DNA of 63,817 nt, counting the filler, from Reticulomyxa filosa (taxonomy: Eukaryota > Protista > Foraminifera), in NCBI GenBank assembly GCA_000512085.1. It is 27 parts of 27 records of this genome, joined end to end, with 100 filler letters (N's around TTAATTAATTAA, not from the genome) between each part and the next. Parts side by side here need not be neighbours in the genome. Positions count along the whole stretch, not along the records: positions 11,681 to 13,197 come from ASPP01003810.1; positions 13,298 to 16,228 come from ASPP01029378.1; 25 more parts are not named here. The stretch is one strand, 5' to 3'. Of the stretch, positions 12,512 to 14,900 are shown in pieces. How positions within the stretch are numbered: the stretch's first letter is position 1; each line of letters begins with the position of its first letter. Position numbers and translations under genes: made by a program. Below the pieces are notes generated by a model. That model ran no database searches. It was given only the letters and a program-made list of their open reading frames with translations, and was not told the DNA's origin.

Positions 12512-13407
12512 GACTTTTCAAAATTTCTGGAAAAAATGTTGGTAGTTACCCAAAAAAAATAATATTTTGAATCTTTGGAAATAGATTTGATGCAAAAACC
12601 AAAAACACAAGAAATTCTTTTTTTGCAACTTTTCTCGTTGAACTTTTCTTTTGTGGAGTATTGAATTTTTGGGAATTTTCCAATTTTTTTTCATTTTTTT
12701 TTCGTAGTACACGTATTCTAATTTATTCCTGCTTTTTTTTTCTTAGACATTTCTCGTGCAGAAAATAATAAATCAACGATCATAAAAAGCATTCGTAGCC
12801 TTCAGTACTAACGCGCGACTAAACCTCTCACGAATAACAACAAAGTATCCGCGAATTTCTTTTGGCTTACATTTAACAAGAGCATAGCACAAGTGTGTAC
12901 ACCAGTGGTTTTTTTTTTTTTTTTTTTTTTGAGAGTGAAACGTCCATGACATCAACGAGACAACCCAATAACAATGAAAGTGTTGTCACTTGTAGTTTTT
13001 TTTTTTGTTTTTTTTTATGCAAAAGGGGAGGGGGGGGGGGAGGGTTTTTTGGATTTTCATGGGAGGTAAAAAGTTTGGAACGAAGCAACATTTGAACTTG
13101 TCAAACAAACAAAAAAAAAAAAAAATGAAAACAAAAACACGTGATAGGAGGAAAAAAAAAAATGAATTACAAAGACAAACAATACAATCCATCACAANNN
13201 NNNNNNNNNNNNNNNNNNNNNNNNNNNNNNNNNNNNNNNNNTTAATTAATTAANNNNNNNNNNNNNNNNNNNNNNNNNNNNNNNNNNNNNNNNNNNNCAC
13301 CCCTAGCTGTTATGAGGTAGAACACCTCAAGGAAACCATTCCCCAGGCTAGTGTTACAAGTTCTCCATATTTAAACATATCCCATCTCGCTTTCTAAAGT
13401 CTACGGG

Positions 13408-13474
13408 GGCAGCATACCTTACTTTAATTAGAAAGGTTTCGCCCCGCCATTGGGCTCATCAGTGCTGCCAGGCG
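13408..13474 (-). ncRNA. Hammerhead ribozyme, type I (HH-A); predicted GUA cleavage between 13415 and 13414
   Basis: Minus strand: GGCAGCA CUGAUGA GCCC-AAUGGCG-GGGC GAAA CCUUUCU-AAUUAA-AGUAAGG UA UGCUGCC. This gives a 7-bp stem I, 4-bp stem II, stem III and a fully canonical core. Confidence 0.93.
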
Positions 13475-13620
13475 TATTATAGCCTTTTTAAGACTTTTGA
13501 TAGTTTATTTTACTCGTATTGTTATAGCTACTGAAGTTGCTCGCACCCTCCTGTCTCTGCAAAGCTCCCCAAAGGGTTTTGCTGAGTAGGTTGCGGACCG
13601 ACTGGGCTTCAGTAGCGCAT

Positions 13621-13661
13621 ACGGTTTCGCCCTACCTTTGGGCTCATCAGTGCTCTCAGGT
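13621..13661 (-). ncRNA. Hammerhead ribozyme catalytic strand (HH-B)
   Basis: Minus strand: ACCU GAGAGCA CUGAUGA GCCC-AAAGGUA-GGGC GAAA CCGU. There is no local complement for stem I; the matching substrate is at 14456-14468. Confidence 0.85.
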
Positions 13662-13914
13662 CGAGATGTGCTTTCCACTAGCCATCCCCTATGTGCTTCC
13701 TAGCGACAAAGTCTTCACTAGTCTCCATATACCTCTGGAGGTCCTAGTACGACTATGCTGGGCATAGGGTGCAATTAGTGGCATCTCTAATGGGAAACGG
13801 TAACCTTCGGCTAATACACCATGGCTAGCGTATGACCGTCAAGTGGGCCGCACTTGATTGACCTATCACCACGTCTCAGGTGGCGTATAGGAGCGGATGC
13901 TATACTAGCAGTGT

Positions 13915-13960
13915 AAGAGCTTTCGCCTGTTGACAGCCTATCAGTGCTTCTTCGAACACG
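13915..13960 (-). ncRNA. Variant or degenerate hammerhead-like core (HH-C)
   Basis: AGAAGCA CUGAUAG GCU-GUCAACA-GGC GAAA GCUC. It has the same AGCA-CUGAU...GGC-GAAA frame as HH-A and HH-B, but G8/A9 are swapped. Confidence 0.45.
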
Positions 13961-14455
13961 AAGCTTATAGATAGGCGTGTAGAGCAGTTCGGACAGCTAC
14001 ACTTAACCCATTCCCCTTAGATTTTCTATGCGGCGCCCCCAACATGTCTATGGCAGCTCTACGATTACTCTCGAAGGTGATAGAGCTTAAGGTTAGTCCG
14101 GGCACCACATGGCATGAATGCTCCTACGACAAGCGCGTAGCATGTGTCGGCGTACTGGGCCAATTCCCGTTGGTCTTTGCAAATGGGCCGGAACTATGTT
14201 ACCATCACGACCCCCAGTCTTTGTACCTAAGTCCGAAGACATCAGTACGCTGATACTGGTTCGAGCCACCCACCCCGGGCAGCTAGGGGTAACGTCCTCC
14301 CCGGTAGGCAAGATATAATACCGGCCAACTCAAGCACCGTATATATCCGTCCTCCGTTTCCAATGAAGAGGGCCAACTAACCCTAAGGTATCACGTTCTT
14401 AGCAATTAGGAACGCGTACCATAGAGGATGTTGAAGAGTCGCTAATCCCTTAGGG

Positions 14456-14468
14456 AAGAGCAGACCGT
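14456..14468 (-). ncRNA. Distal substrate strand for HH-B; GUC cleavage predicted between 14463 and 14462
   Basis: Minus strand ACGG-UC-UGCUCUU pairs with CCGU (stem III) and GAGAGCA (stem I, 6 Watson-Crick pairs plus 1 GU) of HH-B. Confidence 0.72.
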
Positions 14469-14900
14469 GAACCACCCCAATCTCATTTGTCCACCGCCTG
14501 TGAGCTGCAGCACAGCAAACACAGGAGGGCCCTACTTCTCCGTCTCTCGGGACAAGCCCGCGGAGTGGAGTAGGGTGAGAAAGCAAGTGGCGCTTTCTAG
14601 TGTGTTGTAAGGAAGAGCAATGCTGTTCCATTACAAGCGTAGAAAGCGATATGATGTTTAAGGCATCATATGTTCACCTACACACAACCCAGTGTGCAGA
14701 CTGAATATTTGATACGATCGCCTATCCAGTTTTAGCCTGAGCTTAAAAGCTTGCGAGAGTTATCCTCTACGCGCACTTTCGCACTTTTTGAGCTTTAGTT
14801 GTCCCTTACAGGTCCCAACTAGACTAGGGTTTAGCCGTTGTCCTCATGGGGGGAGCTATCGAAAGAGACCCCACATGGGTAGTCGTAAGTGCTTATGCAG

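Follow-up and report, generated by a model that had tools for sequence, protein, structure and literature searches.

The minus strand of a GC-rich (guanine- and cytosine-rich) block in the genome of the foraminiferan Reticulomyxa filosa carries what its core and helices mark as a complete type I hammerhead ribozyme (HH1), together with the enzyme strand of a second hammerhead (HH2) whose catalytic core is intact. The block occupies positions 13298-14900 of the window, which is the whole 63,817-nt stretch joined from 27 parts of assembly GCA_000512085.1, and all analyses were confined to the piece in which it lies, 13298-16228. An earlier note, made from the sequence of the window, had proposed that the block encodes a large self-processing RNA. 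A self-processing RNA, whether retrozyme-like or a ribozyme-matured non-coding RNA (ncRNA), is also the best reading of our results, and it is a predicted one. The evidence that carries it is the modelled structure of HH1, the occurrence of two cores on one strand, and the conservation of the second enzyme strand.

The hammerheads

HH1 and the other features of the block are listed here, with the evidence for each in brackets.

13402..13476, minus strand: HH1, predicted complete type I hammerhead (core scan, minimum-free-energy (MFE) folding, pair probabilities, shuffles)
13621..13660, minus strand: HH2 enzyme strand (core scan, 87% identity to the HH1 block over 38 nt)
13512..13625, minus strand: long local hairpin, possible helix III of HH2, ACCGUAU..AUACG-A-GU (pair probabilities 0.33-0.57)
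14456..14468, minus strand: candidate distal HH2 substrate, ACGGU-C^UGCUCUU (best partner of the HH2 arms in the block)
13921..13950, minus strand: HH3, degenerate hammerhead-like core, AGCA-CUGAUAG-GCUGUCAACAGGC-GAAA (core variant at 13944-13921)
13298..14900, minus strand: GC-rich (about 50%), highly structured block without a credible open reading frame (ORF) (composition, ORF scans, folding)
14348..14800, both strands: the part with the strongest structure, made up of arrayed, imperfect 40-80 nt hairpins (z about -5 in 300-nt windows)
14902..14910, no strand assigned: TATATATAT at the GC/AT boundary, which might promote minus-strand transcription as a TATA-type element or be a (TA)n target for insertion (sequence, GC profile)

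Three helices surround the core of HH1. Helix I comprises 7 bp, GGCAGCA (13469-13463) against UGCUGCC (13414-13408); beyond a CCU/CC internal loop it continues as UACG/CGUA. The core runs from CUGAUGA (13462-13456) to GAAA (13440-13437), with a 4-bp helix II, GCCC/GGGC, capped by the loop AAUGGCG. Helix III is a closed 7-bp hairpin, CCUUUCU-AAUUAA-AGUAAGG. Cleavage is predicted at GUA^U, between 13415 and 13414 (after A13415), where U16.1 and A17 precede the site. This three-way junction is the MFE structure in contexts of 86, 101, 1000 and 1583 nt, and the pair probability of helix I is about 0.89 in the ensemble of the full-length RNA. On this modelling, HH1 is a complete, stable, monomeric type I hammerhead that should cut after A13415. 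Its core and helices place it in the hammerhead class, though it falls below the Rfam thresholds.

The cores themselves are not a product of chance. The pattern CUGAUGA-N(4-30)-GAAA occurs exactly twice, both times on the minus strand (13462-13437 and 13650-13625) and each time with a 4-bp helix II, against an expectation of 0.04. Among 5000 shuffles scanned for CUGANGA, a helix II of at least 3 bp and GAAA, 0.2% held one core, none held two and none held the full type I motif. Because no shuffle gave two cores, their chance origin is excluded. The two canonical cores and one variant (CUGAUAG...GAAA at 13944-13921) that the earlier note had placed on the minus strand were all recovered there. 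HH1 and HH2 have the invariant residues C3-U4-G5-A6-N7-G8-A9 ... G12-A13-A14, which HH3 lacks (CUGAUAG), and HH1 alone has three helices together with an NUH cleavage triplet. The plus strand yielded no ribozyme, either with Rfam at relaxed E or in the core pattern scan.

HH2 consists of CCU, a helix I arm GAGAGCA (13657-13651), the core CUGAUGA (13650-13644), a helix II GCCC/GGGC with the loop AAAGGUA, GAAA (13628-13625) and a helix III arm ACCGU (13625-13621). A 38-nt block is common to HH2 (13660-13623) and HH1 (13472-13435), with identity at 33 of its 38 positions (87%). It coincides exactly with the enzyme strand: it begins at the CCU in the internal loop of helix I and ends at GAAACC, and no similarity was detectable between the two neighbourhoods outside it. 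The earlier statement that the hammerheads share their core only and sit in unique sequence agrees with this result: 38 nt are shared at 87%, and nothing else in the block was found repeated. Since the similarity covers exactly the enzyme strand and the flanks are dissimilar, the conservation of HH2 points to constraint.

The long local hairpin could serve HH2 as helix III and would put a GUA^A site after A13511. No local helix I goes with it, as the sequence after 13511, AAAUAAAC, cannot pair with the arm GAGAGCA. The HH9 model suggests a different, short helix III and a GUC^C site at 13597; this too comes without a helix I and was rejected. Because neither site has a local helix I, HH2 is modelled as a hammerhead that is not complete in cis. 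Between its local helix III and HH1 lies an AT-rich island of ~55 nt within the GC-rich block (13475-13530), the minus strand of which reads AAUAAA directly after the GUA^A site.

In HH3, G8 and A9 are disrupted and GGC precedes GAAA. As a working hammerhead it was rejected: its best substrate, at 13562, offers 7+3 pairs (a helix I of 3 bp), and its core is defective. HH3 is probably dead, either a decayed copy or a chance match. The 'multiple hammerhead ribozymes' of the earlier note were thus an overstatement, because only HH1, with all three helices, is complete in cis, whereas no local helix I is available to HH2, and G8 and A9 are lost from HH3.

Composition, coding content and folding of the block

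In 200-nt windows, the block holds 45-57% GC, against 21-30% over 14900-15300, which confirms the reported jump to about 50% GC in an AT-rich setting. The drop at about 14900 is abrupt; the other end of the block is cut by the contig edge at 13298. Two ORF-bearing stretches beyond the AT-rich spacer have 38-47% GC in windows of the same size. The longest standard-code ORF in 13298-14900 is 96 codons. Alternative codes (UGA as Trp, UAR as Gln, single stops recoded) gave no convincing long ORF in the block, and a Pfam search with 10 of its ORF pieces returned noise only, so that the absence of a credible ORF, also noted earlier, holds. No ORF enters from the contig edge, where all three minus-strand frames have stops within the last ~50 nt. 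The block contains no tRNA or transfer-messenger RNA. Rfam gave no match at its gathering thresholds, those of the hammerhead clan (CL00010) included. At E up to 10 its only matches in the block were sub-threshold hammerheads; rRNA, introns, other ribozymes, GOLLD, ROOL and small nuclear RNA were all absent. The Rfam comparison that the earlier note had called for therefore did find hammerheads, all of them with sub-threshold scores.

Folding was compared with dinucleotide shuffles. The interval 13298-14297 has an MFE of -353.9 kcal/mol (z -3.97) on the minus strand and -348.7 kcal/mol (z -5.54) on the plus strand, and for 14300-14910 the z-scores are -5.41 (minus) and -6.35 (plus). The AT-rich flank folds like its shuffles (z about 0 in 300-nt windows). 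A dense array of hairpins had been described from the sequence, and the folding is indeed stronger than that of shuffles, with z about -4 to -6 against ~0 in the flank. The GC, ORF, Pfam and shuffle-controlled folding results together establish that the block is non-coding and unusually structured.

The structure does not favour one strand. Full-length MFEs are -563.9 (plus) and -577.5 (minus), the MFE structures hold 55 G.U pairs on the plus strand and 43 on the minus, window z-scores are mixed, and the better-folding strand varies from window to window. The remark in the earlier note that the wobbles are G.U on the minus strand finds no support here, because neither the MFEs nor the G.U counts nor the window preferences pick a strand. 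The UUCG tetraloop it mentioned is present as one cUUCGg hairpin (minus strand, 14240-14231). It has no evidential weight, since ~0.4 such hexamers per strand are expected by chance (1600/4096). A perfect 11-nt inverted repeat, ACCCCTAGCTG / CAGCTAGGGGT (13299-13309 and 14280-14290), closes the 1-kb MFE structure on both strands; alone it is not significant (BLAST E 7.9).

A candidate split hammerhead and the proposed locus

The whole minus strand was scanned for NUH sites complementary to both arms of each ribozyme. The candidate distal substrate of HH2 pairs over 5 bp with the helix III arm ACCGU and over 7 bp with the helix I arm GAGAGCA. Its predicted cleavage lies between 14463 and 14462, 812 nt 5' of the HH2 core. 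These 12 contiguous pairs equal those of HH1 with its own cis site, and the cross-pairings reach 7 each. Where the helix I arm of HH2 differs from that of HH1, the site differs to match: position 5 changes from G-C to C-G, position 6 from C-G to U-A and position 7 from C-G to U.G, and in helix III position 15.4/16.4 changes from U-A to G-C. The matched changes are not independent covariation, because the site was chosen for its complementarity. That HH2 acts as a split hammerhead on the 14463 site is suggestive on this modelling and, at roughly one chance in three, doubtful.

The candidate substrate is the first copy of a 12-nt direct repeat, TAGGGAAGAGCA / TAAGGAAGAGCA, at 14451-14462 and 14608-14619 on the plus strand; the minus strand reads UGCUCUUCC(C/U)UA. 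The second copy forms an arm of a 58-nt hairpin, in which it pairs with GGAACAGCA, and lacks the U16.1 needed for cleavage.

On the self-processing reading, the piece would hold a head-to-tail pair of transcription units, of which the GC-rich block would be a minus-strand ncRNA of at least 1.6 kb. Its transcript would start just inside the GC/AT boundary, downstream of TATATATAT (14910-14902). HH1 would cut this transcript after 13415, and HH2, as a split hammerhead, would cut ACGGUC^UGCUCUU at 14463, a site that lies 812 nt upstream of it in that transcript. A 1048-nt RNA (14462 to 13415) would thereby be freed, with 5'-OH and 2',3'-cyclic phosphate ends, the substrate of the RtcB/tRNA ligases that join retrozyme circular RNAs (circRNAs). 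The locus may derive from a hammerhead-bearing retroelement, with HH3 as a decayed third copy. The predicted product has 50% GC and a branched fold, and a rod-like circular fold was rejected on that account.

In favour of this reading, the GC drop coincides with the TATA-like run, the neighbouring ORFs lie upstream on the same strand, and the block, in contrast to the flank, combines strong structure with the lack of an ORF. These two ORF-bearing stretches, 15647-15249 and 16070-15765, are on the minus strand, as are the hammerheads. The interval between them is T-rich and bounded by GT..AG, which gives them the look of two exons of a single gene, the second being rich in cysteine (YNCGCDCMWF...ECWSCFGKGG). 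Searched as separate exons, they matched no Pfam family and no homologue among 5.8 billion proteins.

Several results weigh against this picture. HH1 scores 24.2 bits where the Hammerhead_3 threshold is 48.5, and 24.4 where that of the RAGATH-1 hammerhead is 56.3, possibly because its alignments show long unmatched insertions; HH2 scores 14 bits against a threshold of 52 (HH9). The distal site was found post hoc, with P only 0.007 against shuffled sequence and 0.027 against randomised arms. Its pairing with HH2 is missing from the ensemble (probability zero), it can be enforced only at +7.8 kcal/mol relative to the MFE, and the local helix III hairpin of HH2 is preferred over it. When the two strands are folded as separate molecules, the substrate pairs preferentially with the core, in an inactive duplex of non-hammerhead form. 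The block folds as strongly on the plus strand as on the minus, and its G.U counts show no minus preference. The RNA 3' of HH1 runs beyond the contig edge. Finally, this is a single sequence with no homologue in the databases searched, and hence offers no covariation.

Self-processing therefore stands as a prediction: the searches gave no homologue and hence no covariation, one hammerhead is complete in cis, the structure is strand-neutral, and the retrozyme features looked for were absent. What stands of the original proposal is that HH1 is predicted to be complete and to dominate the ensemble, and that the HH2 strand is conserved; what does not is more than one cis-complete hammerhead or a preferred strand. 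The block is probably either a self-processing ncRNA or the remnant of a mobile element. That its minus strand is specifically a hammerhead-processed ncRNA or a retrozyme-like element is a tentative view, to which we give somewhat less than even chances. The full version, a self-excising RNA of ~1 kb cut by two diverged hammerheads, one of them split across 0.8 kb, with circularisation-ready ends, is unlikely.

Known hammerhead systems and rival explanations

Type I hammerheads with a stable helix III occur in some bacteria and phages, in fungi, in amniote introns (HH9/HH10) and in untranslated regions (UTRs) of chrysoviruses, fusariviruses and megabirnaviruses (PMC13725137). HH1 resembles them in its invariant core, its G10.1-C11.1 and A15.1-U16.1 pairs and its GUA triplet. 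In its open helix I, an internal loop lies at a distance of 7 bp from the core and faces a 7-nt loop II, and its helix III is a closed 7-bp hairpin. Unlike the known members, HH1 falls below every Rfam gathering threshold and lies in a unique, ORF-less block of a DNA contig rather than in a viral UTR, an intron or a phage.

For a split HH2, the closest precedent is the discontinuous Clec2 hammerhead of mammalian 3' UTRs, which has an insert of 150-1500 nt within helix I (PMC6155905 and PMC2920678, summarising Martick et al. 2008). As in Clec2, the candidate has its substrate strand 5' and its enzyme strand 3' on one transcript, and its helix I would be closed by 812 nt. Unlike Clec2, it is only predicted (P 0.007-0.03) and thermodynamically disfavoured, it lies outside any recognised mRNA 3' UTR, and it adjoins a second, conventional hammerhead.

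Retrozymes comprise a plant long-terminal-repeat (LTR) type with type III hammerheads and an animal non-LTR type with type I hammerheads, the latter in tandem units of 170-400 nt (PMC13725137 for the units). Plant retrozyme circRNAs measure 600-1000 nt (PMC5680766). The block is likewise non-coding DNA, the transcript of which could, by prediction, be cut at two hammerheads into an RNA of ~1 kb with ligatable ends. It differs from the LTR type in that its only direct repeat of any length is 38 nt, HH1 is type I, and no primer-binding site (PBS) was matched. Retrozyme LTRs are about 300-400 bp each. Unlike non-LTR retrozymes and satellites, the block has no tandem unit; all that recalls one is the spacing of the cores, 188 and 294 nt. 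Its two ribozymes are also non-identical, and one of them would be split.

Penelope-like elements offer a further comparison. The block shares with them hammerheads in eukaryotic non-coding sequence and a boundary on a (TA)n run (PMC8557442). Their hammerheads are minimal, with almost no helix III (PMC6155905), whereas helix III of HH1 is long, and the piece has no reverse transcriptase (RT) or GIY-YIG coding sequence. A telomere-like 10-mer in the block is in the wrong orientation for the Athena/Coprina Penelope type. Set against viroid-like replicons, the block has neither terminal redundancy nor a plus-strand ribozyme, and the predicted 1048-nt product is branched rather than rod-like. The locus would work like a ribozyme-processed RNA, yet it fits none of the LTR retrozyme, non-LTR retrozyme/satellite and Penelope-like families, because the defining features tested for were lacking.

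Searches for repeats and relatives bear on these comparisons. Tandem Repeats Finder and self-BLAST detected no tandem or diverged repeats in the block beyond 38 nt, and self-BLAST no terminal redundancy. The tRNA-Met PBS sequence TGGTATCAGAGC had no match at up to 2 mismatches (a polypurine tract was not searched for). The hammerhead block of 29-32 nt is absent from IMG/VR, from JGI metagenomes (two scans) and from GTDB genomes. A contaminant or vector origin was rejected, as BLASTN of the block against phages and plasmids gave no match. A looser hammerhead pattern hit 25 IMG/VR contigs, mostly phage-sized, that have only the generic core in common with the block. An IMG/VR viral contig, IMGVR_UViG_3300020042_006270 (positions 11647-13166), has three hammerhead cores on one strand within 1.5 kb. 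Helix II, CCCCUGGCA(A/C)GGGG, is near-identical among them and GUC^UGGCA sites follow. It is a case of clustered hammerheads in a presumed phage, unrelated to the block beyond the core.

The block could also be what is left of a mobile element with hammerheads that inserted into a (TA)n site and, now decaying, has no present function. The element would have been a non-LTR retrozyme or a satellite array, or else a Penelope-like or other retroelement of which the block is the non-coding or pseudo-LTR part. HH1 would then happen to be intact, while HH2 has lost its substrate and HH3 its core. We consider this rather unlikely, though much is in keeping with it. The three hammerheads show graded decay, with HH3 most and HH1 least affected, and their spacings, 294 nt (HH3 to HH2) and 188 nt (HH2 to HH1), fall within the 170-400 nt of animal retrozyme units (PMC13725137). 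Type I hammerheads are known from protist satellite DNA (PMC6155905). The boundary falls on TATATATAT, and some Penelope-like elements insert preferentially at (TA)n (PMC8557442). The contig is also broken within the block, as contigs are at repeats. Neutral decay should, however, also have hit the core of HH2, and nothing of a unit is similar outside the 38-nt enzyme strand. The ORF pieces give no RT, endonuclease or Pfam signal, tandem repeats and a match to the tRNA-Met PBS are missing, and the long, stable helix III of HH1 is unlike the minimal Penelope-like hammerheads (PMC6155905).

A foreign RNA replicon is improbable as the source, be it an endogenised DNA copy or a mis-assembled RNA-virus 5' UTR or viroid-like RNA joined to AT-rich host DNA. 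In its favour are the abrupt compositional break near 14900 and the cores, which stand 1.25-1.45 kb into a 1.6-kb ORF-less stretch strongly structured on both strands. Type I hammerheads with a long helix III were reported in 2026 from megabirnaviruses, chrysoviruses and fusariviruses, in the long 5' UTRs of these viruses, along with totivirus ribozyme pairs 186-399 nt apart (PMC13725137); the cores here are 188 nt apart. Against it, no ORF enters from the contig edge (stops in all three minus frames). Nor is the hammerhead block matched in IMG/VR or JGI metagenomes, there is no plus-strand ribozyme or terminal repeat to suggest a circle, and the 9-nt TA run appears too short for a k-mer mis-join. 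Least probable, and very unlikely, is a ribosomal DNA (rDNA) spacer (5' external transcribed or intergenic) or another GC-rich housekeeping ncRNA gene in which the hammerheads are incidental or aid processing. Such spacers typically stand out from an AT-rich genome by high GC, strong structure and a lack of ORFs. The end of the contig also falls within the block, as it would at a collapsed repeat, and the boundary is TATA-like. Against this stand the exclusion of two cores by chance and the absence of any rRNA or other non-hammerhead Rfam match even at E up to 10; a literature search, judged on titles and the openings of abstracts, found no hammerheads in rDNA intergenic spacers.

Hammerheads are widespread in eukaryotic genomes, protist satellite DNA included (PMC6155905), so that one hammerhead here is unsurprising in itself. 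Three things give the locus its interest: it lies in unique sequence, its second enzyme strand is conserved, and it yields a testable prediction of a split ribozyme and a circRNA. To our knowledge, eukaryotic genomic hammerheads sit almost always in repeats (retrozymes, satellites, Penelope-like elements), with a few domesticated in introns or UTRs. A long, highly structured non-coding block of unique sequence that holds a complete hammerhead and a second conserved enzyme strand would be a setting of another kind. Should the split HH2 prove real, Clec2-type discontinuous hammerheads would extend beyond mammals, which would make this the first known outside them, and two ribozymes would provide a simple route to a 1-kb, possibly circular RNA. 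The locus would then amount to a gene, free of LTRs and tandem repeats, for a retrozyme-like circRNA in the chromosome of a microbial eukaryote. If the block is instead a captured viral UTR or a decayed retroelement, it would be an ordinary addition to the hammerhead catalogue. Either way, the cleavage sites are exact and cheaply testable predictions.

The telomere-like 10-mer, CTAACCCTAA (14377-14386, plus strand), amounts to 1.7 repeats of the C-strand of a TTAGGG telomere, like the template of a telomerase RNA. It occurs once, where 0.01 occurrences are expected for the exact 10-mer and ~0.02 when all phases and both strands are counted. The idea of a telomerase RNA was rejected, and the match is probably due to chance, because a predicted stem encloses it and the hammerheads are on the other strand.

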